Assembly (NCBI GenBank): GCA_002269645.1
Contig: NIVC01000969.1
Location: 1 to 64,000, forward strand
Source of the DNA: Macrostomum lignano
Taxonomy: Eukaryota
DNA: 64,000 nt
Reading direction: 5' to 3'
This document shows, piece after piece, positions 741 through 55,522 of this stretch (position 1 is its first letter; each line of letters begins with the position of its first letter). The notes beneath the pieces are model-generated. The model searched no databases. It was not told where the DNA came from and was given only the letters and a program-made list of their open reading frames with translations. A program made the translations under genes and the position numbers.

Positions 741-10040
<9,300 letters not shown>

Positions 10041-15283: not shown

Positions 15284-16607
15284 ATGGCGCAGCTCTTGGT
15301 GCTGTGCGCTCTGTGTGCAGCTCTTTGTGCTCTTGGAGGCGGTGAGTTGTCTTGGAGGCGAGGACAGGTGTGGACCTCGTGACGAACTTCAGTGTGACTT
15401 CCGTAAAGCAGATGGATGGAGGATCTGTGGTTTGTCGCGTCTCTCAGATGGGCCTCGAGGACCTGGACAAGGCGTTCTCCCAGAACATTACTGTTTTCTG
15501 TGAGTTCTCTGTCGCGACTGCTCCAATTTTTATATCAATATAAAATCTAATAGAGGCTTGCAGTGCGTTCGTTTTCTGTTTGCAGTCCGATCGAAGGTGG
15601 ATCTGACTGGCTCAAGGATTTCAGGATCCATTGTGCTCGTCAGCGTCAATGTGACGGATGGAAACCCGACACCGCTGGTGAACTGCTCGCTGCTCTCGAG
15701 CTCTGCAACTCGACATGTGGGTTCTCAGTGTGCACAGTTGCTCCACTTCCATTTGCATTGAGTAGCTTTAATGCAGCAGAACCGGTCATTTTAGGAGGTG
15801 TCCAGGAAGGACTCGACAATGCTGAAAGTCGGACTCCATGAGATACGAGTAGAAGTCGATCTGCTTTCAAGAGACCAGCGTCAGTCAGCCAACGTCACGT
15901 GTTCTGTGAAGCAAGACTATGCGGGTTTCAAAAGCAGCAGCCTTGTCTTCTTGGCGCTCAAAGCTGACGAGAGTTTTCAAGCTAGCGACCAAGAAAGTGA
16001 GCAGTTCTGTGTAGTCCAGCTTTGCTGCATTCGTCTTTCTAAACTCTAAAAATAATCGCATCACTTTGTCTCATTTTATCTGATTAATGCAGAGCATGGG
16101 GGCCTCAGCTGGAATCAAATGTTTCAAATTCTCTGTCTGTGCGCAGTGGTTGGTGTTGCCATCGTTCTGTCCATCTCGCTGCCTGCCACAGTCTACGTCT
16201 GGAGGCGAACTGCATCGCCTCCGTTAGGAATTCAGTGGCAGCACAGAGCAGCCACAGACAGGAGACCAGCTGACGTACCTCTGGTCCCTGTGACTGCTGC
16301 TGAGCGAGATCCCAATGTAATATTGCTTTTCAGTATTGCTTGCTCATTTTGCTGTTTAATCTGTGAGTGAGGCTGACAATCTGCGGCACTTTTCAGACCG
16401 TCTACTACTATGAGGAGAACCCGGCGCTTCCGGATCGGCCTCCGAGCGTTGAGGAGACGGACTCAAATGTAAGTCTATTGTCTGCATCTTTGCCAGATGC
16501 TCCCAGTGCATGCTCACTGCAGGATTCAGTTCCGCTCATTGCAGATGGTGCACTGTTCTGAGGAGGAGCAGACGGCTCAGGGAGCTGTCGAATTCTACGT
16601 GCAGTGA
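15284..16607 (+). CDS. Copy A: internally deleted receptor (signal, one Ig-like domain, TM, tail), about 250 aa if spliced
   Basis: Exons 15284-15341 (MAQLLVLCALCAALCALGG), 15586-15716, 15795-15996, 16093-16316 (TM), 16397-16468, and 16545-16607 or 16523-16561. Phases are compatible. Closely matches the first and last exons of copies B and C. Confidence 0.7.
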
Positions 16608-19600
16608 AAGTGATTTGCAAGTTCGAGTTTCGCTACTCAGACTCTTGGAGAAACCAAAACTGCATATATGAGAGCATTGGCTGACTGAGCTTGCCTATAT
16701 AGGCTCTGTTGCGCCGTTTGAAAGTACAACTGAGTGGCACAAAGATTTGGTAGAATAAACAAAGTCTCGTTTTCGATATATTATTTTTAAACGATGCTAT
16801 CAAAAACTATGCACAATAATGGTTATTAATCTGGAATTGGAGTGGCGTTGGACACGGGGCACAAAATGGGGTGGTGGGCTCACAAGGATGTACAATCAAT
16901 AATTTAATAGTTAATTAGTTCACGCACGCATTGGCGGTTAGCGTAAAATTTTAAAACAAGCCACAGGTACAGCGACAGACCCAGCGCTGCCTCAGACTCA
17001 GTGCATGCTTTCAAGGTTCCTGTGTATAAGACTGGCAATGCTTTCCAGACACTAAGTAGCGATAGCAAAGTAGTAGCTTGTATTTTGATTTTGTCGGGAT
17101 TGAAGCTTTTCTGGCCTGACTCAATGAGACAATGCCTGACAGAGCAACTTTGGAAGGCTTGCAGAAGGATTTAAATCACTTTTATAAGCCTTGGGTTTTT
17201 TTTTGTAGCCATTGGTGTTTGATGAGTGTCATTGAAATAACCTTTTCTACAGATCTAGTGCATATATTTGACATTTTAATCCGGTTTGAAGGCTCTCTAA
17301 CTCACAGTATCAGTTTACTACTTAAAATTCTGTCTTCTTTGCATGATATTTTTGTAACAGGGTCTATGAAAGTTCAGCATGTGATCTACTGACCCATTAC
17401 TTTATTAGTCACTCAGGAGCTGCACTTCAGTGTGTATCTCTTGCAAAGTGGAACTTGTGTTTGGCATCGGAATAAACAGATGCACCACCTCATCTCCTCT
17501 GCTTTAGCCGCTCGAAAACAATGTTTTATCAAGATTACACACTTTGGCACCTACACATTGGCATTGAAGCGTGCAGTAGCGTGCAGTAGAAGTGTGCCGT
17601 CAGCCTAGTGCACTTGTCTGTGCTTAGAGTGACTGATTTTCTCTTGTTGGTTCGACGACTTGAATAGTTTATAATTCCATTTTGCAGGCTTCTCCGTTAT
17701 GCCGTAAAGACGGTCTCTGATGAGAATGTCACCGAAGGTGTACTCGACCCGGAGGGTTGTGGTTCGGGCTCCCAGTTGCCCATGGCCGACCCTGCCTGAA
17801 GGGTAGTTTAGGCCAGAGGATGACGGTCTCTGAGGAGGCCGACCTGGTCCACTAAAAGCGGGTTGGCGGAGCCATACCAATTGCAAGAAATAAAGAGCTT
17901 CACAGTTAGGATCACCCAGAATCTCTCGCCCCTGATGGCGCCCAATCTTTGCCTCTTATGGCTATGGCTCACCCCTGCCTATCCAAAATTACTGCTCTCT
18001 TTGTGATGCAGCCCAAGCTTTGTGCTACGCAAAGGGGGATTCCAGTTTTTAGGTGGCCCGGGTCCAGTACCCATGGGGAACGGGGAACTCAACCAACTAT
18101 TCAAAAGACAGAGCCAAATCCGTGCTTAGGCAACCCCGTTTAACAACAACAGCGGGGCCTGTGAAAGTTCAGCGGTTGGATCTACTGACCCGATACTTTA
18201 TTAGTGCACTTCAGCGTTTTTCTCTTGCAAAGTGGAACTTGTGTTTGGCATCGGAATAAACTTTTTACAGATGCGAGATTCTGCACCACCTCGTATCCTC
18301 TGCTTTAGCCGCTCGAAAACAATGTTTTATCAAGATTAGACTCTGCGAAACCAACGCATTGGCATTGAAGCAGTGTGCAGTCAGCATAGTGCACTTCTTT
18401 GTCCTTGGAGCAACTGATTTTTCATCTTGGTTAGACGACTTGAATAGTTTATAATTCCATTCTGCAGGCTTCTCCGTTATGCCTTCACTGATAACTTTGA
18501 TAACCCTTACCAACTAAATTTCATCTAAACCTGCATCTCTGACTTGCGTGTTCACTGGCCTTCAGCTTTTGGACCTTCAACTGCTATTTGAAGTTTAATA
18601 GAGTTCTGTCCAATTGCTGGTTGGACAAATAACCGAAGACGGAAGTTAATGACCAACACAAACCAGAGACTGAAATTACTCGTAGCAGCACGGGACAGTG
18701 AATTTGAAACAATTGGCAGATGGCTGCCCGAGGCGTCTTAAGAGAGGGGGGCTATTTTTAGAGACAGAACTGGACCTCTTCGTACACCACGCGCGCTGAG
18801 AAGCCTAAATTATCGATCGTGCAACTGTTTGCGAAAGCGTTCAACGCACACAAGCTCAACAGATTAAGCGGCCCAATTGGGGAGCCACCGCACGCAAAAT
18901 TACACAGACAGACGATACGATCATTTATCTGACAAGTTATTTCAGACGCAGAATCTCGGTATAGCAGTTCGTTCTACTGGAAGTAATAAATTCGGAGTAT
19001 ACTTGTAGATTCTGAATGACGTGCAGAGTTTAATTTGTCACAGATAAATTTTGAGTTCGAAAATGGAAATCAAAAATCATTGGCCCGCACAGTCGCTGCC
19101 ATGTTCTGCGAGCCTCATCAAGCAACAGGCTTCACCCAAGGCACCCAAGCCAGCAGACGGGAGCATCCAGCCACCAGACTTTTGCGCTGATGGCGGGATT
19201 CAATACCGAATCACAGGCGATTACTTCTGATAAAAATGATCAATGCTAAAATAATAAAGAAACTACTATTCATATTGCAATCAGCACAATGAACTATGGA
19301 ATATGTCAAACAGTATATTATGCAATTTCCAATCGCGCAGCACACTCAAATCTCATCTCGAAATTTTAAAAACTTTTCATTCACGCGATGGATTTCGATA
19401 TCGCACTCCGTAGCTCTATATAGTACTCATAGTAGCTATTTAACTTGATTTGTTGGTTTTGTCGAAAATTTATATAAATCGCACTTGTGTTCCACCAATG
19501 AAAATGAGATTAGCGGTATCAAGACGTTAATCTAAACCGAATACGTGCAGTTTTACCCGGGAGAGAAATTTCGCAACCGAGCCAGCAGTTTTCACTCCAA

Positions 19601-19674
19601 AGCACAGCTGCTGCTGCTGCTGCTGTCTCAGTTGCCAAGGAAGCACTGAAAGCTGCTCTTCTTCATCAGCTGTC

Positions 19675-22600
19675 ATGGCGCAGCTCTTGGCGCTGTGCGC
19701 TCTGTGTGCAGCTCTTTGTGCTCTTGGAGGCGGTGAGTTGTCTGTCTACCCTCAATATCAGATATATTGTAAGCCTTCATCACTCATGTGAAGCCCCTGC
19801 TCTCTTACAGCGGCGAGCTCCATCAAGTTCAACATCACAAAAACTAACATCGCGGCTTCCTGGCAGTCGTCAGAATACTTCAACAGGTGCTTCAGAGACA
19901 CGGCTGTTCTTGAGCAGTGGGATTACTTTCACACAACGGGCACCCCAGACTCTCATGGAAACCAGTGGCTGCTCATTAAGCTGTCCCGTGCAATCCGTGT
20001 GCAATCAGTCACTGTCTATGGCAGGGCAGCAGGTGAGTTGTCTTGTCCACTTCTGTCTCTTCTGCTTCACTTCTTTCTTACTTCTCTTCTCACTGCAGAG
20101 CCCAGCAGAGCACAGAACATCGAGATTCTGCTGAGTGACAGACTGCCACCGGGTCTGAATACGAGTAGCGATAGTTGCTATGGGACTCTGTCCGGTAGCT
20201 TGAGCTCGCTCACTCAGTGCGGAGTCACTAAGTATGAGCAGACTCAGACTCACAAGGTGGCCTGCAGCTACTCTGACTGCCGGAATGTGGGTTTGTCTCC
20301 ATCTACTCTGTTGTTGCCGAGTGCAAATTGGTGCAAATAGGTGCGATTAGGAGGTGCAAATAGGTGCGATTAGGAGGTGCAAAGAGGTGCGATAAGAAGG
20401 TGCAAATAGGTGAAAATAGGTGCAAATAGGTGGAAATAGAAGGTGCAAATAGGTGCAAATAGGTGCAAATAGGTGCAAATAGGTGCAAATAGGTGCAAAT
20501 AGGTGCGATTAGGAGGTGCAAATAGGTACAAATTGGTGCAAACTGGTACAAATAGGTGTAAATAGGTGCAAATAGTTGCAAATAGGTGCAAATAGGTGCA
20601 AATAGGTGCAAATAGGTGCAGGTGCAAATAGGTGCGATTAAAGGTGCAAATAGGTGCAAATAGGTGAAAAAATGCAAATAGGTGCAAATAGGAGGTGCAA
20701 ATAGGTGCAAATGGGTGCAAATAGGTGCAAATAGGTGCAAATAGGTGCAAATAGGTGCAAATAGGTGCAAATAGGTGCAAATAGGTGCAAATAGGTGCAA
20801 ATAGGTGCAAATAGGCGCAATTAGGTGCAAATAGGTGCAAAAAGGTGCGATTAGGAGGTGCAAATAGGTGCGATTAGGAGGTGCAAATAGGTGCGATTAG
20901 AAGGTGCAAATAGGTGCGATTAGGAGGTGCAAATAGCTGCAAATAGCTGCAAATAGCTGCAAATAAATGGCTAAATCACGCGAAATTTCAGGTGACTGAG
21001 TACATCTTGCTAAGGAAGAACGTTCGAAACGAATCTGATAAGTACATGAACTTTCAAGCTCTGGAAGTCGAAGAGGGTACGACTTTAGTTGATTAAAGCT
21101 TAATTATGCCTTCATGGGACATTGTTGACTCGAAACAAACTTTCTCTCTTTCAGCATCTCAGAACGCGCAGATTTATAGGTGTGAAGTGTCTGGCGGACG
21201 CCTCAGTAACTGCAGACTCAATGCTTTGCAAACTTTGAAAAGTGGCGACAGAGTTTATATGAAAGTCTGCCCACCGTGTCAGCTTCCGACAACTGATGCG
21301 GCATCTTGTCACATTGCTGCTCCAAGTGGCAATATCACACAGCTGAGAGTTGTGAGCTCACGGACGAATTTATTTCTTTTTAAATGATTTTCACAGACTA
21401 TTCGACTAAATAGTAGGAATAAGTGGAATGACCAATTATGAATGTTAACACTTTATTTTTTATACGATTGTAGCCAGTTTCTTAAAGTTCTTTCACCATT
21501 TTCAGAATGGGCACCAAGACTCCAATTTAATTGTAATTTTTACATCGACTGCGGAAAGTCAAGGAGGAAACTTCACGTGCAGCTTTAACTGCTTGAGCGA
21601 GTTGCCTCAGTCAGCAACTGAACCAATCGGTTTCTTTGGTATGCAGCTTTTGTGTGTAATTTTTACCTTGACAGGTGAATTCAAATTAAACTTATAGATT
21701 TGTAGAGCAACCTTGTACTATTCAAACTGTTGTAATCTGGGGTATTGGTATTTTGCTGGCAGCCTACTATCAGGTGCAGTACAAATGACACCCAAAAAGC
21801 AGGTTGCAGTGCAAATGACACCCTAGCAGCAGGTGCAGTACAAATGACACCCTAGCAGCAGGTGCAGTACAAATGGCAGCCTAGCAGCAGGTGCAGTACA
21901 AATGACAGCCTAGCAGCAGGTGCAGTACAAATGACAGCCCAGCAGCAGGTGCAGTACAAATGACACCCTAGCAGCAGGTGCAGTACAAATGACACCCTAA
22001 AAGCAGGTTGCAGTACAAATGACACCCTAGCAGCAGGTTGCAGTACAAATGACACCCTAGCAGCAGGTGCAGTACAAATGACACCCTAAAAGCAAGTGCA
22101 GTACAAATGACACCCTAGCAGCAGGTGCAGTACAAATGACACCCTAGCAGCAGGTGCAGTACAAATGGCTGCCTAGCAGCAGGTGCAGTACAAATGACAC
22201 CCTAGCAGCAGATGCAGTACAAATGACAGCCTAGCAGCAGGTGGGTCATTTCACGAGAGGGTCGCATCATTTTTTGAACTTTAAGCACTTGTAACTTCTG
22301 AGCCATAATAGATAAACAAAGCTGCAAAAAGCAATCTGTGTCAAACTTCTAGTTCTATATTTTTCACATAGCTGCTTATGAATTCTAAAACAACTGAACA
22401 CATAGCAGAGCGTCAACCGTCAGCATAGTTTATTCTCTGCTATGTGTTCAGCTGTTGTCCAGGTGCAGTGCGAACGGCTGAGCTCATTTTCTGTTGCAGA
22501 GGAGAAGCCCAGAAGTGTCAGCATTGAGCCCAGCAACGGGGTTCAGCTTGGATCAATGATATTTCTGGCTTCAGGCATGGAGTTCCACTTCAGCTTCATC

Positions 22601-25600
22601 ACAGAAGCTGCGTACCCAAGTCCCATCCATGCTTGTAGGCTGGTGAGAACTTCTGAGCGGGAAACTACAGAAGATACTTCAGGTGTTCAACTGCATCCCT
22701 TTACAGAGGTGAGAAAATCCTGTGCAATCTTAATACTTTCATTTCCCATTCTGATCTTCTCATTAAATGCTTTTTCAGAGATCCCTCACTGACGCATCAA
22801 GTCATGTAATAACCAAGATCTCAGAGTATAGACTCAGCATTAGCGCACACATGCAAGCAGCTGGGCAAAAGATACAGTGCGTGTCGACTGTCGGTGAAAG
22901 CAGTGAAAAATCGGTGAAATCAATTTCGCTGCCTGAGCTTGTAGGTAAGCAAAAATATTGGAGGGCGAATACTGGCAGGTACCTGGAATTTCTCATAATG
23001 GATGAAGATGAGTTGTATTGAAATGATAAAAACTGCAGTTCCAAGCAAGCCGGAGTTTCTGCTACCGCCAATCACGGATTGGAAAGACGGCCACTCCGTC
23101 TCAGTTGCTGTCAACTCATCAACAGACAGCGCTGTTACAACCAGCCACCGCTGCTTGCTGGAGACTCGAGACGGCAACAGAAGTCTCAACGCTACTCAAG
23201 TGAGTCTTGCTTTGGTTTCATGCCGTCGTAATGTCGGTTTAAATTAATAATTTACAATTGCAAAAAATTGAATGATTTTCATCTAACATCGAATATTTCC
23301 TTCATGCGCCGCTGAAAAGCATTCAGCGTTCTGAGCATGAGCAGGCTTTGTTTCTCATTGAAATTTTAAAACTATTCTGAAGCTCAGATTGGACACCGTG
23401 CTCATAAAAAATATGAAATTTCTAAATTGCTACAAATTTCGGTTTGTTCTCTTCCATACATGTCCATACACAGGACTTACGTATTCTCGCATGGTAGACA
23501 CTTCTCAAATCGAAATTCCAGGTAACAAATAAAAGCAGTAAATTCGAGTTGGATGTTGATAGACACTGGGGAAACGCAGCCTCTCTGGTCTGTTTGGTAA
23601 ATCAGTCCGGACTGATCCAGACATGGACTCGCCATCGGCTACCGAAGGTGCTCTGTGAGTCTCTGATGCCATGACTTTCTTCACAAGCCCATTCTGCATT
23701 TGAAGATTAAATCACGATTGCATTTTCGAATTCAGACAAGGCCGAAGGGCTGGCCATCCGTATTTTGTCAGGAGACCTGGTGAGTGATGAAGAAGCCAGC
23801 TTCTCAGTGACTGCATCTGACTCAGGATACCCAGCGGCTCTGCACCAGTGCAGAATCGAGAGCAAGAGCCTCGGAGAAGACAAGGTATGAGGCTGATGTT
23901 ATTGCTCATTCAGAGTTCCCAGCCAGCAGTTCAATGCTACAATTTCGGTTGACCATTCCGCAGACTGCAGAGTCAGACGGCTCAAGTCACTGGAGATTCA
24001 CGCCTCAGCGAGGGCACAACGGTGAACAAATCAGATGCGATGTGGTGCAGAAACTGAGTGGCTCTTTGATATTCAGTCAGACTGTAAACAACTCTAATCT
24101 GGAGGTTAAATGTGAGGCTCATGCTTTATTATGCTGCATGCTGTGATCCCGACCGATACAGTAGGGCTGCTTGCACTTCAGACAAGGCAACTGTCACGTG
24201 GCCCAGAAATATCGCTCCGAAAAAGGAAGGAGAGGCTCTGTCATTCGTTGTGCTCACAGACGGCAACCCAGAGCCCAGCAGTCAGTGCTGGCTGCAGCTG
24301 GTTTCTGGCGCACAGGTGAGTCTTTGATTTGGGATGATGCTGGTTTCTGGCTCACAGGTGAGTCTTTGATTTGGGACTGATGCTGGTTTCTGGCGCACAG
24401 GTGAGTCTTTGATTTGGGATGATGCTGGTTTCTGGCTCACAGGTGAGTCTTTGATTTGGGATGATGCTGGTTTCTGGCTCACAGGTGAGTCTTTGATTTG
24501 GGACTGATGCTGGTTTCTGGCGCACAGGTGAGTCTTTGATTTGGGATGATGCTGGTTTCTGGCTCACAGGTGAGTCTTTGATTTGGGATGATGCTGGTTT
24601 CTGGCTCACAGGTGAGTCTTTGATTTGGGACTGATGCTGGTTTCTGGCTCACAGGTGAGTCTTTGATTTGGGACTGATGCTGGTTTCTGGCGCACAGGTG
24701 AGTCTTTGATTTGGAATGATGCTGGTTTCTGGCTCACAGGTGAGTCTTTGATTTGGGACTGATGCTGGTTTCTGGCGCACAGGTGAGTCTTTGATTTGGG
24801 AGTGATGCTGGTTTCTGGCTCACAGGTGAGTCTTTGATTTGGGACTGATGCTGGTTTCTGGCTCACAGGTGAGTCTTTGATTTGGGAATGATGCTGGTTT
24901 CTGGCTCACAGGTGAGTCTTTGATTTGGGACTGATGCTGGTTTCTGGCTCACAGGTGAGTCTTTGATTTGGGAATGATGCTGGTTTCTGGCTCACAGGTG
25001 AGTCTTTGATTTGGGACTGATGCTGGTTTCTGGCTCACAGGTGAGTCTTTGATTTGGGAGTGATGCTGGTTTCTGGCTCACAGGTGAGTCTTTGATTTGG
25101 GAATGATGCTGGTTTCTGGCTCACAGGTGAGTCTTTGATTTGGGAATGATGCTGGTTTTTGGCTCACAGGTGAGTCTTTGATTTGGGAATGATGCTGGTT
25201 TCTGGCTCACAGGTGAGTCTTTGATTTGGGACTGATGCTGGTTTCTGGCTCACAGGTGAGTCTTTGATTTGGGAATGATGCTGGTTTCTGGCTCACAGGT
25301 GAGTCTTTGATTTGGGAATGATGCTGGTTTCTGGCTCACAGGTGAGTCTTTGATTTGGGAATGATGCTGGTTTCTGGCTCACAGGTGAGTCTTTGATTTG
25401 GGAATGATGCTGGTTTCTGGCTCACAGGTGAGTCTTTGATTTGGGATGATGCTGGTTTCTGGCTCACAGGTGAGTCTTTGATTTGGGAGTGATGCTGGTT
25501 TCTGGCTCACAGGTGAGTCTTTGATTTGGGATGATGCTGGTTTTTGGCTCACAAGTGAGTCTTTGATTTGGGAGTGATGCTGGTTTCTGGCTCACAGGTG

Positions 25601-28600
25601 AGTCTTTGATTTGGGATGATGCTGGTTTTTGGCTCACAAGTGAGTCTTTGATTTGGGATGATGCTGGTTTCTGGCTCACAGGTGAGTCTTCAATTTGGGA
25701 TGATGCTGGTTTCTGGCTCACAGGTGAGTCTTTGATTTAAGAGTGATGCTGCTTTCTGGCTCACAGGTGAGTCTTTGATTTGGGATGATGCTGGTTTCTG
25801 GCTCACAGGTGAGTCTTTGATTTGGGAGTGATGCTGGTTTCTGGCTCACAGATGAGTCTTTGATTTGGGAGTGATGCTGGTTTCTGGCTCACATGTGAGT
25901 CTTTGATTTGGGATGATGCTGGTTTCTTGCTCACAGGTGAGTCTTTGATTTGGGAGTGATGCTGGTTTCTGGCTCACAGGTGAGTTTTTGTTTTATGATG
26001 ATGCTGGTTTCTGGCTCACAGGTGAGTCTTTGATTTGGGAGTGATGCTGCTTTCTGGCTCACAGGTGAGTCTTTGATTTGGGAGTGATGCTGCAGTCTCG
26101 GTGTTTCATAATAATCACTATTCTCGTTCCAGGTAGACCTGCATAAGCTGAAGCATTCCATGTTTGACAGCACCTTCAACGTCACTGTTAATAGGTCAAT
26201 GAACCGAGCCAACTTGAGCTGTGTTTTGACTCAACTTGGACTTCCATCTTCAACGGAGCAGAGCTTCACCCAATTGATCACAGTATTTTGTAAGTTTACA
26301 GTATCCATTTTCATAGGGTTCATAAAGAGGTATACAATTTGTAAATGAGTGCGTATCATTTGAGCCAATGGAGACATTTCCTGTCGCTTAGGAGGCTCTG
26401 ACTTGAAGCACTTCTTAACTCGTAGACTGAAAAATAATATCGACCCAACCATCCTACAGATCAGCCTCAGCCTCCACTCACCATCGACTTGGCTCAGACT
26501 GTCTACGAAGGCACCGACGTCACCTTCACGGTGCGGTCGGGCGCTGGAAACCCCAGCGTCACCCACAGATGCCACGTGTACAACGAAGAAATTGTGAGCG
26601 CAATATTTGCTCATCAAATCACCTGAATTGCAGCTGTGATTTAACACAGAGTTGATCATTCCAGGAAGTTCAAAACAGCATGAAAATCGAATCGGAGTAC
26701 TTGACAATGGTGAACTATGCACCCAACAGTCATGACACATTTGTGAGCTGCACGGCCGAGCAGATGCACCGCTCTGATGTTGTGTTCACCAGCAGCATCA
26801 GAAGGAGCATCACCGTCAATTGTGAGAAATCAAATGCCATTTTATTAGCATGCAGCCTGGCATTTACTTGAAAACCGGAGTATCCACTTTAACTTCAGAC
26901 TTTGCGCACAACTCCATGGACGTCAGTCCGGCAGACGGAGTTCTTGCTGGAGATCGAGTCGAAGTGACACTCAGATCTTATGGTGGCCGGCCTGCCGTCA
27001 CTCAGCATGAGTGTTCGCTTGGAGGCTCTGAGCTGACTATGGAAAACGTATGCTTTTTATCACCTGAGTGCTTTTGAATTGACTGTAAGCCTTCTTCAGG
27101 CATCCTAAATGATCAATTTGAGAATTTTTCTACAGGTAACAAGGCGTCCCACCGAAGTGAAGTTCACGTTCCGTGCATCGAAAGAGCACGACGGCAAGGT
27201 GCTCGCCTGCAAATTCGTCCAGGATGAGCGACTGATTGAGTGGAAGAGAGAGAATCTCAGCGTCTTCTGTAAGTACAGTTTGAGTTGTTTATTGGTGTGA
27301 AAGTATGGGGGTATCTTCTACATTGAAAAGTAACTCGTTAAGCCACACTGATGTAAATGTGCACTGCTTTTTCGCACCTGTAGACAAAGCGGATTTCGAC
27401 TCTGAGGTACGAATCATAAAGAGAAAAGTCAGGTGGAACACGACAGTCCAGTTCAGCATCTCCTACTCTGATGTGGGAAACCCGTCCGCCAAGCACTTCT
27501 GCCGCATCGGCTCTCGGCCACTCACCGATGCTGAGGTGCGAAAATGCTGACCCACATTTTTGTGCCCGCTTTATGTAAGTAACAAGGTAATTAGAGGTTG
27601 TAATGGAAAACATCTGGTCAAAATACATTTCAGTCGGTTTCGGCATCACAAATATTGTCGCGCTGGAAGTTCAAGGCTCAAGTCGGAGACAACGGTCAGA
27701 AGATTGTCTGCCAGGTGGTGCAAAATGATCGAAATGGCGGCCGAGTCTTTAACCAAACAGTTGCCAGCCAGAGTCTTGATGTGCTCTGTAAGGATTGAGT
27801 TTATGTGCTGTATTGATTTCTTCAATGGAGCTATTTACAATTATTCCAATGTAATCAAGCACTTTGATTGTCACAAGTTCACTGTTTACAGCATCGTTTT
27901 TCTTAATCTCTCCATCTTTTCAGACCCAGTCAGGTACTCAGGATTTCTATCCCAGCCACCGTCAGTGACGGAGGGCGATCCCTTGGTTATTTCTTTCTTA
28001 TCAACATCAGGAAACCCCGAGCCTCGTCACCGATGCTGGTTGCAGACACCTGAAGGTCGGATGGACGCAGTCAATCTAACAGAGGCGAGGACAGGTGTGG
28101 ACCTCTCGACGAACTTCAGTGTGACTTCCGTAAAGCAGATGAATGGAGGATCTGTGGTTTGCCGCGTCCGTCAGAAGGGCCTTGAGGACCTGGACAATGA
28201 GTTCTCCCACAAAATTAATGTTTTCTGTGAGTTCTCTGTCGCGACTGCTGCAACTTTTATAACAATACAAAATCTAATAAAAAAACGTTCGTTTTTCCGT
28301 TCCAGTCCGATCGGAGGTGGACCTGACCGGCTCAAAGATTTCACGATCCACAGTGGTTGTCAGCATCAATGTGACGGATGGAAACCCGACACCGCTGGTG
28401 AACTGCTCGCTGCTCTCAAGCTCTGGAACTCGACATGTGGGTTCTCACTGTGCACAGTTGCTCCACTTCCATTTGCATTGAGTAGCTTTAATGCAGCTGA
28501 GCCGGTCTTTTTAGGAGCTGTCCAGGAAGGACTCGGCAATGCTAAGAGTCGGACTGCATGAGATAAAAGTCGATCTGCTTCCAAGAGACCAGCGTCAGTC

Positions 28601-29323: not shown

Positions 29324-30149
29324 AAGTGATTTGCAAGTTCGAGTTTCACTGCTCAGACTCTGCTTTGGAGAAACCAAAACTGCACATACGAGAGCATTGG
29401 CTGACCGAGCCTGCTTATATAGGCTCATTGCATGCTTCCCAGGTTTCTGTGTATAAGACTGGCAATGCTTGTCAGACACTAAGTAGCGATATCAAAGAAA
29501 TATTTTTATTTTCTTTTCTGTCTTGCTGGATAATATTTTAAACAATAACTCGATTACCTTGAGAATCAAAGATGTCGAATCGAATCAGTGCCGTCAGTGT
29601 TGTGTATGATGGTGACAATGCTCGTCAGGCGCTATGTACGAGGAGCGTTGCAAAGGTTTCCGGACTGTGTTTACAGTGAACGACATGAACGCCCACAACT
29701 CCTTGCACAGCTGCTCTAATGAATGAAAAAGCTGCAAAATGATTCGAACTTGTAAGTAAATTTTTTACAATTTAGAACAGGTACACATGGGCTTTGTTAT
29801 AACGATTGGGAAATTCAAATTTATCACTGGCTGGCACCGTCTTACTACTGGCGGGTGCTCCGACGCCGCGGTTAGGCCGCGAGGCCCCTTTCGCACGCTA
29901 TCACCGTCACTGTCGCCATTTTCCCCTGCCGTTGACATGCCAGGATGAAGTGCCGTTGGCTCTCCTTTGATCCAATAGTTCGAAGCATTTTTGCTCGGTG
30001 CATTGCCTCGTTTGAGTGACCGAAAAATTAGCAGCTTAAAAGTACAATTTGCTCTGTGTACTGTGATATTCCATCAGCAGGTTGTCTGTGGAAAATGTTT
30101 TCAAATCGTTTTATAAAACCCAGGCATGATTTTGCTCAGCATGTAGAAT

Positions 30150-33951: not shown

Positions 33952-33981
33952 ACTGAAAGCTGCTCTTCTTCGTCAGCTGTC

Positions 33982-42900: not shown

Positions 42901-42907
42901 GCAGTGA
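33982..42907 (+). CDS. Copy C: lectin-like + 10 Ig-like domain receptor with the same TM/tail type as A and B
   Basis: Exon-for-exon paralog of B, e.g. 33982-34039, 34118-34339, TM exon 42399-42616, 42697-42768, last exon 42845-42907 or 42823-42861. No frameshift seen in the exons I translated. Confidence 0.85.
34636..34920. repeat. (ATAGGTGCAA)n repeat, copy C
   Basis: Direct reading. Confidence 0.95.
35708..36065. repeat. ~29-bp minisatellite, copy C
   Basis: Direct reading. Confidence 0.95.
38128..39680 (+). repeat. 42/43-bp splice-donor minisatellite, copy C (about 36 units)
   Basis: Same unit; first donor at 38148. Confidence 0.95.
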
Positions 42908-46791: not shown

Positions 46792-49700
46792 ATGGCGCAG
46801 CTCTTGGCGCTGTGCGCTCTGTGTGCAGCTCTTTGTGCTCTTGGAGGCGGTGAGTTGTCTGTCTGCCCTCAATACCAGATATATTGTAAGCCTTCATCAC
46901 TCATGTGAAAGCCCCTGCTCTCCTACAGAGGCAAACTCCATCAAGTTCAACATCACGACAACAAACATCGCGGCTTCCTGGCGGTCGTCGGAATACAACA
47001 ACAGGTGCTTCAGAGACACGGCTGTTCTTGAGCAGTGGGATTACTTTCACACGACGGGCACCCCAGACTCTCATGGAAACCAGTGGCTGCTCATTAAGCT
47101 GTCCCGTGCAATCCGTGTGCAATCAGTCACTGTCTATGGCAGGGCAGCAGGTGAGTTGTCTTGTCCACTTCTGTCTCTTCCGCTTCACTTCTTTCTTACT
47201 TCTCTTCTCACTGCAGTGCCCAGCAGAGCACAGAACATCGAGATTCTGCTGAGTGACAGACTGCCACCGGGTCTGAATGCGAGCAATGGCAGTTGCTATG
47301 GGACTCTGTCCGGTAGCTTGAGCTCGCTCACTCAGTGCGGAGTCACCCAGCGTGAGCAGACTCAGACTCACAAAGTGGCCTGCAGCTACTCTGGCTGCGC
47401 GAATGTAGGTTTGTCTCCATCTACTCTGTTGTTTCTGAGCAAATTGCAAATAGGTGCAAATAGGTGCAAATCGGTGCAAATAGGTGCAAATAGGTGCAAA
47501 TCGGTGCAAATAGGTGCAAATCGGTGCAAATAGGTGCAAATCGGTGCAAATAGGTGCAAATAGGTGCAAATAGGTGCAAATGGGTGCAAATAGGTGCAAA
47601 TCGGTGCAAATAGGTGCAAATAGGTGCAAATAGGTGCAAATAGGTGCAAATGGGTGCAAATAGGTGCAAATCGGTGCAAATAGGTGCAAATAGGTGCAAA
47701 TAGGTGCAAATAGGTGCAAATTGGTGCAAATAGGTGCAAAAAGGTGCAAATTGGTGGCTAAAACTCACGAAATTTCAGGTGACTCAGTACATCTTGCTAA
47801 GGAAGAACGTTCGAAACGAATCTGATAAGTATATGAACTTTCAAGCTCTGGAAGTCGAAGAAGGTACGACTTTAGTTGAATAAAGCTTAATTATGCCTTC
47901 ATGGGACATTGTTGACTCGAAACAAACTTTCTCTCTTTCAGCATCTCAGAACGCGCAGATTTATAGGTGTGAAGTGTCTGGCAGAAACCTCAGTAACTGC
48001 AGACTCAATGCTTTGCAAACTTTGAAAAATGGCGACAGAGCTTATATGAAAGTCTGCCCACCGTGTCAGCTTCCCACAACTGATGCAGCATCTTGTCACA
48101 TTGCTGCTCCAAGTGGCAATATCACACAGCTGAGAGTTGTGAGCTCACGGATGAATTTATTTCTTTTTAAATGATTTTCACGGACTATTCGACTAACTAA
48201 TAGGAATAAGTGGAATGAGAAATTATGAATGGTAAAAAATCGTGTTTTTATACGATTTTAGCCAGTTTCTTAAAGTTCTTTCACCATTTTCAGCATGGGC
48301 ACCCAGACTCCAATTTAATTGTAATTTTCACATCGACTGCGGAAAGTCAAGGAGGAAACTTCACGTGCAGCTTTGATTGCTTGAGCGAGTTGCCTCAGTC
48401 AGCAACTGAACCAATCGGTTTCTTTGGTATGCAGCTTTTGTGTGTACTTTTTACCTCAGACAGGTGAATTCGTAAAGCAACCTTCTACTGTTCAAACTGT
48501 TGTAATCTAATATATTGGTATTTTGCTAGCAGCCTACTATCAGGTGCAGTACAAATGACACCCTAAAAGCAGGTTGCAGTGCAAATGACACCCTAAAAGC
48601 AGGTTGCAGTGCAAATGACACCCTAGCAACAGGTGCAGTGCAACTGGCACTCTAGCAGCAGGTGCAGTACAAATGACACCCTAGCAGCAGGTGCAGTACA
48701 AAGGACACCCTAGCAGCAGGTGCAGTACAAATGACAGCCTAGCAGCAGGTGCAGTACAAATGACAGCCTAGCAGCAGGTGCAGTACAAATGACAGCCTAG
48801 CAGCAGGTGCAGTACAAAGGACAGCCTAGCAGCAGGTGCAGTACAAATGACACCCTAGCAGCAGGTGCAGTACAAATGACAGCCTAGCAGCAGGTGGGTC
48901 ATTCCACGAGACAGTCCCATAATGTTTTTGAACTTTGAGCACTTGTAACTTCTGAACCATAATAGATAAACAAAGCTGCAAAAAGCAATCTGTGTCAAAC
49001 TTCTAGTTCTATATTTTTCACAAAGCTGCTTATGAATTCTAAAACAACTGAACACATAGCAGAGCGTCAACCGTCAGCATAGTTTATGCTCTGCTATGTG
49101 TTCAGCTGTTGTCCAGGTGCAGTGCAAACGGCTGAGCTCATTTTCTGTTGCAGAGGAGAAGCCCAGAAGTGTCAGCATTGAGCCCAGCAACGGGGTTCAG
49201 ATTGGATCAAGGATATTTCTGGCTCCAGGCACGGAGTTTCACTTCAGCTTCATCACAGAAGCTGCGTACCCAAGTCCCATCCATGTTTGTAGGCTGGTGA
49301 GAACTGCTAAACGGGAAACTACAGAAGATACTTCAGGTGTTCCACTGTATCCCTTTACAGAGGTGCGAAAATCCTGTGCAATCTTAATACTTTCATTTCC
49401 CATTCTTATCTCGTCCCATTAAATTATTTTTCAGAGATCCCTCACTGACGCCTCAGCCAACAAAAGCCATGTAATTACCAAGATCTCTGAGTACAGACTC
49501 AACATTAGCGCACACAATGCAGCTGAGAAAAAGATACAGTGCGTGTCGGCTGTCGGTGAAAGCAGTGGAAAATCGGTGAAATCAATTTCGCTGCCTGAGC
49601 TTGTAGGTAAGCAAAAATATTGGAGGGAGAGTACTGGCAGGTGATACCTGGAATTTCTCATATTAGATGAAGATGAGTTGTATTGAAATGATAAAAACTG

Positions 49701-52700
49701 CAGTTCCAAGCAAGCCAGAGTTTCTGCTACCGCCAATCACGGACTGGAAAGACGGCCACTCCGTCTCAGTTGCTGTCGACTCAACAACAGACAGCCCTGT
49801 TCCAACCAGCCACCGCTGCTTGCTGGAGACTCGAGACGGCAACAGAAGTCTCAACGCTACTCAAGTGAGTCTTGCTTTGGTTTTATGCCGTCGTGATGTC
49901 GGTTTCGAAAACAAAAACTTTGGCAAAATATTGAATGCGTTTCATCAAATGTCAAATATTTGACAAACGTCATGGGCTGCTGAAGTGATTCATTCGGTGT
50001 TCTAAGCATGAGCATGTTTACTTTCTTTGAATAAATACGAAATTTCTAAATTGCTACAAATTTCGAGTTCTCTTAAAACATTTCCTGTAGTAACTCTGAA
50101 TCAGTCCATGAGTGTGTGTACAGGACTATCCTTCTCGCATGGTAGAGACTTCTCAAATCGAAATTCCAGGTAACAAATAAAAGCAGTAAATTCGAGTTGG
50201 ATGTTGATAGACACTGGGGCAGCCCAGCATCTCTGGTCTGTTTGGTAAATCAATCTGGGCTGATCCAGACGTGGACTCGACATCGGCTACCGAAGGTGCT
50301 CTGTGAGTCTCTGATGCCATGACTTTCTTCACAAGCCTATTACTGCATTTGAAGATTAAATCACAATTGCATTTTCGAATTCAGACAAGGCCGAAGGGCT
50401 GGCCATCCGTATTTCGTCTGGAGACCTGGTGAGTGATGAAGAAGCCAGCTTCTCAGTGACTGCATCTGACTCAGGATACCCAGCGGCTCTGCACCAGTGC
50501 AGAATCGAGAGCAAGAGCCTCGGAGAAGACAAGGTATGAGGCTGATGTTATTGCTCATTCAGAGTTCCCAGCCAGCAGTTCAATGCTACAATTTCGGTTG
50601 ACCATTCCGCAGACTGCAGAGTCAGACGGCTCAACTCAGTGGAGATTCACGCCTCAGCGAGGGCACAACGGTGAAAGAATCAGATGCGATGTGGTGCAGA
50701 AACTGAGTGGCTCTTTGATATTCAGTCAGACTGTCAACAGCTCTAATCTGGATGTTAACTGTGAGGCTCATGCTTTAATCTGCTGCATGCTGTGATCCCG
50801 ATCGATACAGTAGGGCTGCTTGCACTTCAGACAAGGCAACTGTCACGTGGCCCAGAAATATCGCTCCGAAAAAGGAAGGAGAGACTCTGTCATTCGTTGT
50901 GCTCACAGACGGCAACCCAGAGCCCAGCAGTCAGTGCTGGCTGCAGCTGGTATCTGGCGCACAGGTGAGTCTTTGATTTGGGATGATGCTGGTATCTGGC
51001 TCACAGGTGAGTCTTTGATTTGGGATGATGCTGGTTTCTGGCTCACAGGTGAGTCTTTGATTTGGGATGATGCTGGTATCTGGCTCACAGGTGAGTCTTT
51101 GATTTGGGATGATGCTGGTTTCTGGCTCACAGGTGAGTCTTTGATTTGGGATGATGCTGGTATCTGGCTCACAGGTGAGTCTTTGATTTGGGAGTGATGC
51201 TGGTTTCTGGCTCACAGGTGAGTCTTTGATTTGGGATGATGCTGGTTTCTGGCTCACAGGTGAGTCTTTGATTTGGGATGATGCTGGTTTCTGGCTCACA
51301 GGTGAGTCTTTGATTTGGGATGATGCTGGTTTCTGGCTCACATGTGAGTCTTTGATTTGGGATGATGCTGGTTTCTGGCTCACAGGTGAGTCTTTGATTT
51401 GGGATGATGCTGGTTTCTGGCTCACAGGTGAGTATTTGATTTGGGAGTGATGCTGGTTTCTGGCGCACAGGTGAGTCTTTGATTTGGGAGTGATGCTGCT
51501 TTCTGGCTCACAGGTGAGTATTTGATTTGGGAGTGATGCTGGTTTCTGGCTCACAGGTGAGTATTTGATTTGGGAGTGATGCTGGTTTCTGGCTCACAGG
51601 TGAGTCTTTGATTTAAGAGTGATGCTGCTTTCTAGCTCACAGGTGAGTCCTTGATTTGGGATGATGCTGGTTTCTGGCTCACAGGTGAGTCTTTGATTTG
51701 GGAGTGATGCTGGTTTCTGGCTCACAGGTGAGTCTCTGATTTGGGAGTTATGCTGCAGTCTCGGTGTTTCATAATAATCACTATTCTCGTTCCAGGTAGA
51801 CCTGCATAAGCTGAAGCATTCCATGTTTGAAAGCACCTTCAACGTCACTGTTGATAGGTCAATGAACCGAGCCAATTTGAGCTGTGTTTTGACTCAACCT
51901 GGACTTCCATCCTCAACGGAGCAGAGCTTCACCCAATTGATCACAGTATTTTGTAAGTTTACAGTATTCATTTTCATAGGGTTCATAAAGAGGTATACAA
52001 TTTGTAAATGAGTGCGTATCATTTGAGCCAATGGAAACATTTCCTGTCGCTTCGGAGGCTCTGACTTGAAGCACTTCTTAACTCGTAGAGTGAAAAATAA
52101 TATCGACCCAATCATCCTACAGATCAGCCTCAGCCTCCACTCACCATCGACTTGGCTCAGACTGTCTACGAAGGCACCGACGTCACCTTCACGGTGCGGT
52201 CGGGCGCTGGAAACCCCAGCGTCACCCACAGATGCCACGTGTACAACGGAAAAGTTGTGAGCGCAATATTTGCTCATCAAATCACCTGAATTGCAGCTGT
52301 GATTTAACACAGAGTTGATCATTTCAGGAAGTTCAAAACAGCATGAAATTCGAGTCGGAGTACTTGACAATGGTGAACTATGCACCCAACAGTCATGACA
52401 CATTTGTGAGCTGCACGGCCGAGCAGATGCACCGCTCTGATGTTGTGTTCACCAGCAGCATCAGAAGGAACATCACCGTTAATTGTGAGAAGTCAAATGC
52501 TATTTTATTAGCATGCAGCCTGGCATTTACTTGAAAACCGGAGTATCCACTTTAACTTCAGACCTTGCGCACAACTCCATGGGCATCAGTCCGACAGACG
52601 GAGTTCTTGCTGGAGATCGAGTCGAAGTGACACTCAGATCTGATGGTGGCCGGCCTGCCGTCACGCGGCATGAGTGTTCGCTTGGAGACTCTGAGCTGAC

Positions 52701-55522
52701 TAAGGAAAACGTATGCTTTTTCATCACCTGAGTGCTTTTGAATTGACTGTAAACCTTCTTCAGGCATCCTAAATGATCAATTTGAGAATTTTTCTACAGG
52801 TAACAAGGCGTCCCACCGAAGTGAAGTTCACGTTTCGTGCATCGAAAGAACACCACGGCAAGGTGCTCGCCTGCAAATTCGCACAGGATGAGCGACTGAT
52901 TGAGTGGAAGAAAACCAATCTCAGCATTTTCTGTAGGAGAAAATGAACCAATATTTTTCACGTTTTTTCGCTTTTTGTTTGCAAATGCATGTACACTTCA
53001 CATTCACTTTTCGTACCTTTAGACAAAGCGGCTGTCGACTCTGAGGTGCAAACCTTAAAGAGAAAAGTCAGGTGGAACACGACAGTCCAGTTCAGCATCT
53101 CCTACTCTGATGTGGGAAACCCGTCCGCCAAGCATTTCTGCCGCATCGGCTCTCGGCCACTCACCGATGCTGAGGTGCGAAAATACTGACCCACATTTTT
53201 GTCTGCTGTATGTAAGGGACTGGGTAGTTGATATTGTAATGGGAAACATCTGGTCAAAATACATTTCAGTCAGTTTCAACATTACAATCGCTTTGGAAGT
53301 TCAAGGCTCAAGTCGGGGACAACGGTCAGAAGATCGTCTGCCAGGTGGTGCAAAATGATCAGCATGGTGGCCGGGTCTTTAACCAAACAGTTGCCAGCCA
53401 GACTCTGGATGTGCTCTGTAAGGATTTTGTTTATGTGCTGTATTCATTTCTTCGATAGAGCTATTTATATTTATTCCAATATATTGAACCACTTTGACTG
53501 TCACAACATTCTTTTCTTAATCTCTATCTTTTCAGACCCAGTCAGCTACTCAGGATTTCTATCCCAGCCACCGTCGGTGACGGAGGGCGATCATTTGGTT
53601 ATTTCTTTCTTTTCAACTGGAGGAAACCCCGAGCCTCGTCACCAATGCTGGTTGCAGACACCTGCAGGTCGAATGGACGCAGTCGCTCTAACAGAGCCGA
53701 GGACACTTGTGGACCTCTTGACGAACTTCAGTGTGACTTCCGTAAAGCAGATGAATGGAGGATCTGTGTCTTGCCGCGTCCGTCAGAAGGGCCTCGAGGA
53801 CCTGGACAAGGAGTTCTCCCACAAAATTAATGTTTTCTGTGAGTTCTCTGTCGCGACTGCTGCAACTTTTATATCAATACAAAATCTAATAAAAAAACGT
53901 TCGTTTTTCCGTTCCAGTCCGATCGGAGGTGGACCTGACCGGCTCAAGGATTTCAAACTCCACAGTGCTCGTCAGCGTCAATGTGACGGACGGAAACCCG
54001 ACACCGCTGGTGAACTGCTCGCTGCTCTCGAGCTCTGGAACTCGATATGTGGGTTCTCAGTGTGCACAGTTGCTCCGCTTCTATTTGCATTGAGTAGCTT
54101 TAATGCAGCCGAACCCGTCATTTTAGGAGCTGTCCAGGAATGACTCGACATTGCTGAAAGTCGGACTGCATGAGATGAAAGTCGATCTGCTTTCAAGAGA
54201 GCAGCCTCAGTCAGCCAACGTCACCTGTTCTGTGAAGCAAGACTATGCGGGTTTCAAAAACAGCAGCCTTGTCTTCTTGGCACTCAAAGCTGACGAGAGG
54301 TTTCAAGCTAGCGACCAAGAAAGTGAGCCGATCTCAGCTGCTCGTATTGGTTTTTTCAGCTAGCATGACTTTTTCTGATATTGAAATGTATAAGTGCATT
54401 ATTTCACGGATTTCTCGTATTAAATAGTGCGTTGTCTCACACCGCCAAAAGCAGGAGGGTCGGTAGGCGGCGCTGTCGGCGCCACATTCGGAACGCTGTT
54501 GGCCGTGGGACTGGTCGGGGCCGCAATCCTGCTGCTGCTGAGAGCTCGGCGACTCAGGGCAACTGACGGGCCCGACAATCGCAGCGGCTACTCCAACGGT
54601 AGAAGAGGAGCCAGTGGAGCTGCTCGAACGGAACGAGAAAAGCAACAGCCTAGAAAAAAGCAGACCGAAGATCCCACAGAGACTGAGCTGCAGTTCATGG
54701 ACAAGCACTATCTGTATCCGGTGAGATGAGCATCATTGGACTTTTAATTAACAGATTCCTGATCCAACTTGGAACAATTTGTGTCTTTGAGCAAGACACT
54801 TAACTCTGCATTGCTTCAGTTCACCCAGCTGTAAAATGGGTGCCAGTATTAGCTGGGGTAATTGAGGGTGTATGGCGACCCAGAGTTCTTGGGCTGAACA
54901 GCCGTACGCAGCCTTCAGATGCGCCGCACAATAGCTCGGCGCAATAGGTTGCACGTCTGGCCCCCTGGGTTAGGTGTAATAAATTATTATTATTATTATA
55001 CATCTGAAGCATCTCCCTAGCAATATCTGCAGCCTCTCTTTAGCAACATCTGCAGCATCTCCCCAGCAACATCTGCAGCCTCTCTCTAGCAACATCTGCA
55101 GCCTCTCTCTAGCAACATCTGCAGCATCTCCCTAGCAGCATCTCCAGCATCTCCCTAGCAACATTTGCAGCGTCTCCCTAGCAGCATCTCCAGCATCTTC
55201 CTAGCAAAATGTGCAGCATTTCCGTAGCAACATCTGTAGCATCTCCTTAGCAACATCTGCAGCATCTCCCTAGCAGCATCTGTAGCATCTCCCTAGCGAA
55301 ATCTGCAACGTACCTATTAGCTGTAACCAACACCTACCAGTATTCAAAAACTTGATACCATTGCAGAAGCCCCGCATGGAGTACGCTACGGTTGTCAAGG
55401 GCAAACTAATGGAAGAGACCAGCCTAGCCGACAGCACAGAGACAATCTACCTGACCATCGTGGGCTGCACACAGCCTGAGGATGACAAGGCGCCCACAAT
55501 GCAGAAATCTAAGGTCAACTGA
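46792..55522 (+). CDS. Copy D: same ectodomain with an unrelated TM and an ITIM-like/ITSM-bearing tail (putative inhibitory receptor)
   Basis: Exons 1-23 parallel B and C (46792-46849, 46929-47150, ... ending 54322). Then a TM exon ~54428-54720 (AVGATFGTLLAVGLVGAAILLLL-RARR; acceptor position uncertain) and last exon 55367-55522 (KPRMEYATVVKGKLMEETSLADSTETIYLTIVGCTQPEDDKAPTMQKSKVN*). AATAAA at 55763. Confidence 0.85.
47445..47755. repeat. (ATAGGTGCAA)n repeat, copy D
   Basis: Direct reading; includes ATCGGTGCAA variants. Confidence 0.95.
48538..48897. repeat. ~29-bp minisatellite, copy D
   Basis: Direct reading. Confidence 0.95.
50946..51757 (+). repeat. 42/43-bp splice-donor minisatellite, copy D (about 19 units)
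   Basis: Same unit; first donor at 50965. Confidence 0.95.
54755..55002 (+). mobile_element. CORE/MIR-type SINE copy 3 in the last intron of copy D
   Basis: Reverse complement of copies 1 and 2; ends in an (ATT)n tail. Confidence 0.7.
55005..55310. repeat. ~22-bp degenerate minisatellite (GCAGCATCTCCCTAGCAACATCT)n
   Basis: Direct reading, in the last intron of D. Confidence 0.85.

Follow-up and report, generated by a model that had tools for sequence, protein, structure and literature searches.

Vertebrate innate immunity is characterised by paired receptors, in which one binding domain serves two signalling outputs. To our knowledge, clear cases outside the deuterostomes and cnidarians are scarce, and none has been reported in flatworms. 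A 64,000-nucleotide stretch of the Macrostomum lignano genome (NCBI GenBank assembly GCA_002269645.1, contig NIVC01000969.1, positions 1 to 64,000 of the forward strand; hereafter the window, to which all coordinates refer) carries a tandem array of four predicted gene copies, A to D, in which one conserved ectodomain stands before two different transmembrane/cytoplasmic modules in linked genes. The products are predicted to be type I membrane receptors with a divergent F-type-lectin-like head, a stalk of immunoglobulin (Ig)-like domains, one transmembrane helix and a tail with tyrosine motifs. The reading as a whole, a Macrostomum-restricted tandem receptor array with one ectodomain, two transmembrane/tail modules and two intracellular outputs, is put forward with the balance for and against it about even.

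The vertebrate paired receptors (KIR, LILR, SIRP alpha/beta, SIGLEC5/SIGLEC14) share several traits with the array: near-identical ectodomains are encoded by linked genes under gene conversion, the transmembrane/cytoplasmic part is exchanged at an intron boundary, and one member has a tail of the immunoreceptor tyrosine-based inhibitory or switch motif (ITIM/ITSM) type, a predicted one in the array. However, sequence homology to the array is absent, and the partner is built differently. The activating partner of vertebrates has a short tail and a charged transmembrane residue, which recruits an adaptor with an immunoreceptor tyrosine-based activation motif (ITAM), whereas A, B and C carry a conserved tail of 72 residues with tyrosine and proline motifs; the head of the array, F-type-lectin-like and set on 9-10 Ig domains, is a further difference. 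Long-stalk Siglecs (CD22, sialoadhesin) and PECAM-1 resemble the array in having an N-terminal recognition domain, a long Ig stalk, a single transmembrane segment and two tyrosine motifs about 22-27 residues apart, the design of long Ig stalk and two tyrosine motifs being that of PECAM-1 and CD22. In Siglecs, however, the lectin domain is itself a V-set Ig domain, whereas the array head is a predicted jelly roll related to F-type lectins, for which sugar binding is only putative. The VIgL proteins of molluscs (FREPs, CREPs, GREPs) also combine Ig domains with a lectin-type domain in lineage-specific, expanded families; they differ in being secreted, with the Ig domains at the N-terminal end and a C-terminal domain of the fibrinogen, C-type or galectin kind, and in having neither a transmembrane segment nor a tyrosine-motif tail.

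The F-type lectins (eel AAA, 1k12; striped bass FBP32, 3cqo; the membrane-bound furrowed of Drosophila) are probably remotely homologous to the array head (E = 2e-6 for FBP32) and share its predicted fold class, but the array head has neither the calcium motif h2DGx nor the fucose motif HX24RXDX4(R/K) of these lectins, nor their pair of adjacent cysteines (PMC5712786). Among the F-type lectin architectures given in the legend to figure 1 of PMC5712786, none has Ig domains together with a tyrosine-motif tail. The Alr receptors of Hydractinia, whose role in allorecognition is genetically established, are likewise encoded by clustered, lineage-specific genes of the Ig superfamily with very divergent tails, some of them with ITIM or ITAM, and their Ig domains, like those of the array, have neither the canonical disulfide nor the tryptophan, and the disulfides present are intrasheet ones; they are set apart from the array by the description of their domains as V-set, I-set and Fn3-like, with no lectin-like head (PMC9546547). 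None of these closest known systems shares the architecture of the array, in agreement with an earlier note on this DNA, in which the architecture had not been recognised as that of a named family. A literature search found no paper on the receptor family of the array, and in public records its members are labelled hypothetical or 'Ig-like domain-containing'.

Array layout and gene models

The array extends head to tail from 15.16 to 54.33 kb, with a period of about 13 kb and units that are 90-97% identical (self-BLAST and repeat finding); the window contains no runs of N. Its order is three times cassette, A/B/C tail and spacer, followed by cassette and D tail. The homologous ectodomain cassette is present in four copies, one internally deleted; it starts about 125 nt 5' of the ATG and ends 6 nt into intron 23. 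The model of D was obtained by choosing a frame-keeping GT/AG pair for each pair of neighbouring coding segments. The 23 ectodomain exons of D were projected onto B and C, where the splice sites are intact and the frames open, and for A, B and C the exons of the transmembrane segment and tail were taken from the sequence by direct reading. All introns in the models of A to D, predicted from the genomic sequence, are GT-AG, and all frames are open. The units, genes and principal exons are as follows.

15355-16706, + strand: partial unit A (self-BLAST)
~17.1-29.4 kb, + strand: unit B (self-BLAST)
~30.4-43.0 kb, + strand: unit C (self-BLAST)
~43.4-54.33 kb, + strand: unit D (self-BLAST)
15284-16607, + strand: gene A, internally deleted copy, 6 exons, 222 amino acids (aa)
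15284-15341 (signal peptide), 15586-15716, 15795-15996 (last Ig), 16147-16289 (transmembrane), 16397-16468 and 16545-16607 (tail), + strand: exons of gene A
15355-15499, + strand: remnant of the 3' half of exon 21 inside the first intron of A (blastn boundaries)
19675-29323, + strand: gene B, 26 exons, 1308 aa (exons 1-23, 19675-28710; transmembrane exon, 28860-29002; tail exons, 29113-29184 and 29261-29323)
33982-42907, + strand: gene C, 26 exons, 1307 aa (exons 1-23, 33982-42273; transmembrane exon, 42453-42589; tail exons, 42697-42768 and 42845-42907)
46792-55522, + strand: gene D, 25 exons, 4098 nt, 1365 aa
46792-54322, + strand: ectodomain of D, exons 1-23, with signal peptide, F-type-lectin-like domain (exons 2-4, 46929-47863), Cys-rich probable Ig domain (exons 5-6) and nine Ig-like domains
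54323-54328, + strand: end of the homology of D with A/B/C; shared donor GTGAGC, then unrelated intron sequence in D
54428-54720, + strand: exon 24 of D, phase-1 acceptor; juxtamembrane stretch, transmembrane segment TFGTLLAVGLVGAAILLLL, stop-transfer RARRLR, 60-residue linker
55367-55522, + strand: exon 25, the last exon of D, KPRMEYATVVKGKLMEETSLADSTETIYLTIVGC...KVN and stop codon; MEYATV at 55376-55393, TIYLTIV at 55442-55462

Exon 23 ends in phase 1 at 15996 in A, 28710 in B, 42273 in C and 54322 in D, and in BLAST the homology of D to the other copies stops at 54325-54328. The earlier note had placed this break a few nucleotides past the exon-23 donor (54323 in D, 28711 in B), and donors lie at exactly those positions. 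It had also described one transmembrane segment and tail shared by A, B and C, and in D another transmembrane segment and a tail with MEYATV and TIYLTI; both modules are read as such in the rebuilt models. A residual similarity of B and D across intron 23 and the transmembrane exon, with a global score 4 standard deviations above mononucleotide shuffles, was discounted because both sequences pass from an AT-rich intron into a GC-rich exon.

The ectodomains of B, C and D are 89.0-91.5% identical at the protein level, and most Ig domains of D are split across two exons in phases 1-0-1. A near-identical ectodomain with ten Ig-like domains had been proposed for these three genes; the near-identity stands, as do nine clear Ig-like domains, and the Cys-rich domain of exons 5-6 is probably the tenth (hhalign probability of 79% against the Ig profile). 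Existing M. lignano models of the array genes are fragmentary, with skipped exons and frame errors. A search with a rough translation of D matched M. lignano proteins only. Protein P0004 (UniRef A0A1I8GS81) is 98.6% identical to D over 294 residues (99% in the BLASTP of the database search, for the N-terminal 275 residues of D), with identical junctions in exons 1-6, and several other junctions of D agree with P0001. P0005 agrees with the first 184 aa of B at 100% identity, as does the UniRef protein P0008 with 159 aa of A, where the tail junctions are also equal; for the transmembrane and tail exons of A, B and C, the junctions coincide with those in the database models P0006-P0008. P0001, P0002, P0007 and P0009 represent additional copies at other places, 84-92% identical.

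In A, positions 15162-15352 extend from the 5' untranslated region through exon 1 and 11 nt into intron 1, and they match B at 19562-19743 (blastn). Positions 15355-15552 match B at 28082-28279, intron 1 being fused to the middle of exon 21 at 15353/15355. With this internal deletion of about 8.3 kb, A is not a full-length gene. An open frame in A requires that exon 1 (phase 1) be spliced to the equivalent of exon 22 (phase 1), and the predicted product would at best consist of signal peptide, last Ig domain, transmembrane segment and tail.

The A-B and C-D spacers are 96-98% alike, and the B-C spacer is unlike them, with a patchy match of about 75%. The B-C region 29426-33952 (including 32457-32768 and 33078-33950) contains an array of 21-bp repeats, and between the shared upstream segment and exon 1 of C about 870 bp are inserted.

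Tail modules and ectodomain

In A, B and C the transmembrane segment, (M)VGVAIVLSISLPATVYVW, is followed by ...TVYYYEENPALPDRPPSVEETD...EFYVQ and a stop codon. The tail, 72 residues and not short, carries the conserved TVYYYEENPALPDRPP; its tyrosine cluster YYYEEN is directly followed by PALPDR, and a distal ITSM is absent. PALPDR fits PxxPxR, the class II SH3 consensus.

In D, the exon-24 acceptor at 54428 shares phase 1 with the donor of exon 23, and the frame opens directly into a hydrophobic helix of 19-23 residues (hydropathy 2.37), then RARRLR. No ATG lies upstream of the transmembrane segment in this frame; therefore exon 24 is not a first exon and needs an upstream exon. A codon-usage score, trained on ectodomain exons versus introns, was 0.455 for exon 24, best in the predicted frame, and 0.504 for exon 25 versus -0.058 in the other two frames. 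Known exons in frame scored 0.26-0.62, including the A/B/C tail exons and those of the upstream paralogue gene 1 (see below), which were outside the training set, and scores were negative for the introns flanking the D tail exons and for the DNA downstream. In tblastn with either tail, the D tail had no second match in the window, and downstream of D there was no tail of the A/B/C type.

TIYLTI fits the ITSM consensus TxYxx[VI], and MEYATV is located 22 residues upstream. TIYLTIV is the only match to T.Y..I[VIL] in the six frames of the window. Relatives from M. lignano carry TxY[LT]xIV near the C-terminus, namely TEYTEIV in P0012 (PAA49974), TVYLEIV in P0023 and TEYLDIV in P0034 (PAA92527); by our estimate from ordinary residue frequencies, T.Y[LT].IV is expected in about 1/10,000 tails of such length. 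In P0012 a strict ITIM, VVYAQV, lies 27 residues upstream of this site. Because TxY[LT]xIV recurs in these three other family members, the D tail is probably the family-typical one.

P0019 (PAA53557) and P0034 share one 90% cluster and differ at the C-terminus, where P0034 reads ...EFYINSKLFRSRRLNGDVTEYLDIV... and P0019 stops at ...EFYINSKLFRKA without TxYLxIV. From this pair, the contrast of tails with and without ITSM may recur elsewhere in the family.

The head profile combined the N-terminal regions of B, C and D; the two lectin-like domains of gene 1 were aligned to its first part. In the PDB it matches the F-type lectin FBP32 (3cqo) at the E value given above. Against 1.84 billion representative proteins it has only 23 matches, 19 of them from M. 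lignano; the remainder include a copepod protein named 'fucolectin tachylectin-4 pentraxin-1', two fish proteins and one canonical tandem F-type lectin, the Logan protein P0024. The fish and copepod F-type lectin proteins were matched at E = 9e-9 to 6e-4, and strong Pfam F5/8-type-C domains were found in the copepod protein and in the one fish protein scanned. P0024 is from an unrelated sample and is uninformative on expression of the array genes.

The check by HMMER and structure prediction suggested in the earlier note was run, with a divided outcome. On the array ectodomains, F5/8-type-C scored below threshold and C2-set_2 was the only family above it (42.7 bits versus a cut-off of 21), and every one of the best Foldseek matches of the head model was a galactose-binding-domain-like jelly roll, with eel fucolectin 1k12 and FBP32 among them. 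In the alignment with FBP32, the His of the D head is unaligned and two arginines align with the basic triad of FBP32. By sequence and predicted fold, the head is probably a divergent F-type-lectin-like domain, remotely homologous to F-type lectins; the label denotes ancestry, not activity. The description as 'lectin-like' is retained for a divergent fold of F-type-lectin/discoidin type and does not extend to the canonical sugar-binding motif, which is absent.

For the stalk, 32 Ig repeats from B, C, D and gene 1 were aligned. The AlphaFold model of Ig4 from this alignment has a pLDDT (predicted local distance difference test) of 88.5 and, compared with Ig domains from titin, LAR, CD147 and neuroplastin, a TM-score of about 0.7; the modelled fold is the Ig beta-sandwich. 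The only invariant cysteines among the 32 domains are in predicted strands C and F, and the B-strand Cys is absent; the usual position of the C-strand Trp holds Cys (e.g. D residues 619-715, window 50831-51952). The prediction from this pattern is an intrasheet disulfide between strands C and F. Such a single-sheet disulfide resembles that of CD4 domain 2. Intrasheet disulfides are also reported for Hydractinia Alr domains (PMC9546547).

Evolution of the copies and competing readings

Synonymous divergence (dS) among B, C and D is 0.07-0.08, equal to the divergence of the introns (0.064-0.079), and the ratio of nonsynonymous to synonymous divergence (dN/dS) of the ectodomain is 0.54-0.67, below 1 (Fisher p = 9e-5 to 0.018). 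The most constrained parts are Ig2, Ig4, Ig7 and the lectin-like domain (dN/dS 0.2-0.5; lectin-like 0.4-0.5). In the A/B/C tail dN/dS is about 0.3-0.4, with dN of 0.025-0.036 versus 0.066-0.081 in the neighbouring Ig domain; a 32-residue block including TVYYYEENPALPDRPP is invariant, as is RRPADVPLVPTVYYYEENPALPDRPPSVEETD. Since the tail is under purifying selection, A, B and C are not obviously the decoys that had been suggested. The closest pair of copies switches along the unit, and discordant site patterns fall into 239 runs versus 391 +/- 11 expected. Such clustered mosaic patterns point to gene conversion or unequal crossing-over, by which the copies are held similar. The layout of the array may have arisen when two older neighbouring genes, each with its own tail, underwent repeated unequal exchange. 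Among the 1.84 billion representatives the family is restricted to Macrostomum, apart from the remote F-type lectin matches to the head. The UniProt names of the M. lignano matches (CUB, MATH, SET, IRS-type PTB and others) were ignored; they vary by match and were not reproduced where Pfam was run.

In the proposed mechanism, A, B and C would be spliced in phase 1 to one transmembrane/tail module, and D, as predicted, in the same phase to the other. When phosphorylated, the proximal xYxxV and the distal TxYLxIV of D, 22 residues apart, could recruit tandem-SH2 effectors, e.g. a phosphatase of the SHP-2/Csw type; in vertebrates, phosphorylated ITIMs are bound by SHP-1 and SHP-2 (PMC9546547). 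The A/B/C module, with YYYEEN and PALPDR, could recruit other SH2/SH3 partners, and one extracellular ligand, glycan or not, would then have two intracellular outputs, as in vertebrate paired receptors.

Several observations weigh against a receptor array with two outputs. The transmembrane segment of A, B and C (MVGVAIVLSISLPATVYVW) contains no Lys, Arg, Asp or Glu, and no ITAM is found in the A/B/C tail or the D tail. MEYATV, with Met at position -2, fails the strict ITIM consensus [ILVS]xYxx[ILV] (PMC9546547). The transmembrane segment and tail of D are absent from all proteins in 5.8 billion clusters, both public M. lignano protein sets included, in which only A/B/C-type tails were found. 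The tails of D and P0012 are not significantly similar in BLASTP (E = 1.8); the P0012 locus is a single gene with transmembrane segment and tail in one exon, its intron positions give the tail homology no support, and the putative homology of the two tails rests on short motifs in disordered sequence. In the head of D, the fucose motif is replaced by H-x22-R-A-A-V-P-S-R, with the acidic residue and the Cys-Cys pair missing and the spacing off, and the calcium motif is absent, with zero DG dipeptides in residues 20-184; the AlphaFold model of the N-terminal 275 residues has a pLDDT of 54 and was used for fold class only. Ig6, Ig8 and Ig9 have dN/dS near 1, and A may be a dead copy.

The array is called paired-receptor-like only, by analogy and without assignment to any named family, because there is no charged transmembrane residue and no short adaptor-dependent tail, and because MEYATV is not a strict ITIM. 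An inhibitory role for D, as first proposed, is consistent with the ITSM TIYLTI and an ITIM-like site and is weakened by the departure of MEYATV from the strict consensus. Carbohydrate recognition, proposed in the same place, is only putative: the head is probably a remote homologue of F-type lectins, and the fucose and calcium motifs are missing. Inhibitory versus decoy function and carbohydrate or self recognition are treated here as hypotheses.

The proteins could instead be adhesion molecules of the IgCAM type, of PECAM-1-like or Sidekick/Dscam-like design, acting in tissue cohesion, neural wiring or reproduction and not in immune or self recognition, with the tails providing different cytoskeletal or adaptor coupling in place of opposing on and off signals. 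In favour of this, adhesion molecules typically have stalks as long as these 9-10 Ig domains, the closest structures are Ig domains from LAR, neuroplastin, CD147 and titin, conservation of the lectin motif is lacking, and PECAM-1 itself carries ITIM and ITSM. However, core adhesion molecules are usually conserved across phyla and not species-restricted, whereas this family was found in Macrostomum alone among the representatives searched, and tandem expansion, gene conversion and dN/dS near 1 in several domains also speak against adhesion, which is considered somewhat unlikely. It is distinctly unlikely that the locus has only one functional gene or none, with A, B and C as drifting young chimeric duplicates from unequal crossing-over, or with the tail exons of D unused and D secreted or truncated, e.g. 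by read-through at exon 23, ending ...QASDQESEPISAARIGFFS and a stop codon. That view is favoured by the absence of the D tail from all public protein sets searched, the 8.3 kb deletion in A, the membrane-proximal Ig domains at dN/dS near 1 and the fragmentary public models; it is opposed by GT-AG borders and open frames in all exons (6 in A, 26 in B, 26 in C, 25 in D) despite 7-8% silent divergence, by an overall dN/dS significantly below 1, by an A/B/C tail more conserved than the neighbouring Ig domain, and by D tail exons that score as coding and carry a family-conserved motif.

M. lignano has a repeat-rich genome with a recent genome duplication, and more copies at 84-92% identity exist elsewhere, as might be expected if allelic or homeologous copies had been laid in tandem during assembly. 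The earlier note had named such an allelic artefact as a possible refutation; it is judged highly improbable, since the window is gap-free, the copies are 5-9% apart and differ in their indels and in minisatellite copy number, and the B-C spacer is unlike the others. Proteins of an independent assembly match A and B exactly as separate genes, and one of that assembly, P0003, joins an A/B/C-type tail to the ectodomain that follows, in the same tandem order; the mosaic pattern also indicates recombination between true neighbours.

A stronger form of the receptor-array reading, regarded as unlikely, is that a true paired-receptor system evolved in Macrostomum independently of vertebrates, with an F-type-lectin-derived head on a non-canonical Ig stalk. 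There would be two tail classes, one with the distal TxYLxIV ITSM (D, P0012, P0023, P0034) and one ending at the proximal tyrosine (A/B/C, P0022, P0019), and the ectodomain would have moved between them by unequal crossing-over at the phase-1 intron, giving opposing outputs to one ligand as in Siglec-5/14 or KIR.

Other features of the window and meaning of the locus

Upstream of the array lies a divergent paralogue, and each full copy contains a minisatellite in intron 13.

2971-9587, + strand: gene 1 (approximate), divergent paralogue (tblastn of D versus the window, stop-free segments)
24297-26092, + strand: intron-13 minisatellite of B, 42 copies, 42-43 bp unit
38129-39677, + strand: intron-13 minisatellite of C, 36 copies
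50946-51755, + strand: intron-13 minisatellite of D, 19 copies

Gene 1 has two F-type-lectin-like domains, a Cys-rich domain, about five Ig-like domains and its own transmembrane exon, which ends at a GTAAGT donor after 9587 (hydropathy of the segment 2.41). Its lectin-like domains are in tandem (2971-3165 with 3972-4169; 4826-5125 with 5801-6076), versus one such domain in B, C and D. The third transmembrane segment and tail attributed to gene 1 in the earlier note is supported as to the transmembrane sequence; the tail past the transmembrane exon was not located. A last-exon candidate with SMYASV at 14382 was rejected for want of a convincing acceptor. A 648-bp stretch upstream of gene 1 (1267-1914) is 83% identical to its own reverse complement, a long palindrome or hairpin-forming inverted repeat.

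The intron-13 minisatellite is part of the duplicated unit, with a gene-specific copy number. It begins within exon 13, and each unit has CACAGGTGAGT, which is a 5' splice site consensus, so that dozens of identical decoy donors trail the true one. The minisatellite accounts for strong local GC and AT skew in the composition profile. Two further repeats are present in all three full copies with varying copy number, a 10-bp repeat, (GTGCAAATAG)n, in intron 3 (20321-20965, 34635-34923, 47445-47756) and a 29-bp repeat in intron 6 (21771-22243, 35709-36065, 48541-48896). The 3' part of intron 24 of D, just 5' of the last exon, holds a 23-bp tandem repeat (55000-55307, 13 copies, ACATCTGCAGCATCTCCCTAGCA); since each unit contains CAG and TAG, each is a potential acceptor. 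A dispersed repeat, probably a transposable-element fragment, occurs three times, at 5430-5690 (+), 11181-11371 (+) and 54748-55012 (-, in intron 24 of D), and translates as ...SYCAAHLKAAYGCS.... Downstream of D no clear gene was seen in the window, and its 3' end is occupied by satellite arrays at 59223-59779, 60573-60873, 61808-62578 and 62920-64000, with units of 44, 39, 32 and 53 bp.

If the two tails signal alike, the locus is a plain lineage-specific expansion of the Ig superfamily. M. lignano is amenable to RNA interference and transgenesis. The locus defines a Macrostomum-restricted family whose members have a head of F-type-lectin-like kind, 0-10 Ig domains of unusual type and TxYLxIV conserved at the C-terminus, and it shows the mechanism of tail exchange in readable form: a phase-1 intron bounds a gene-converted ectodomain cassette, and the two tail modules behind it are distinct and each conserved.

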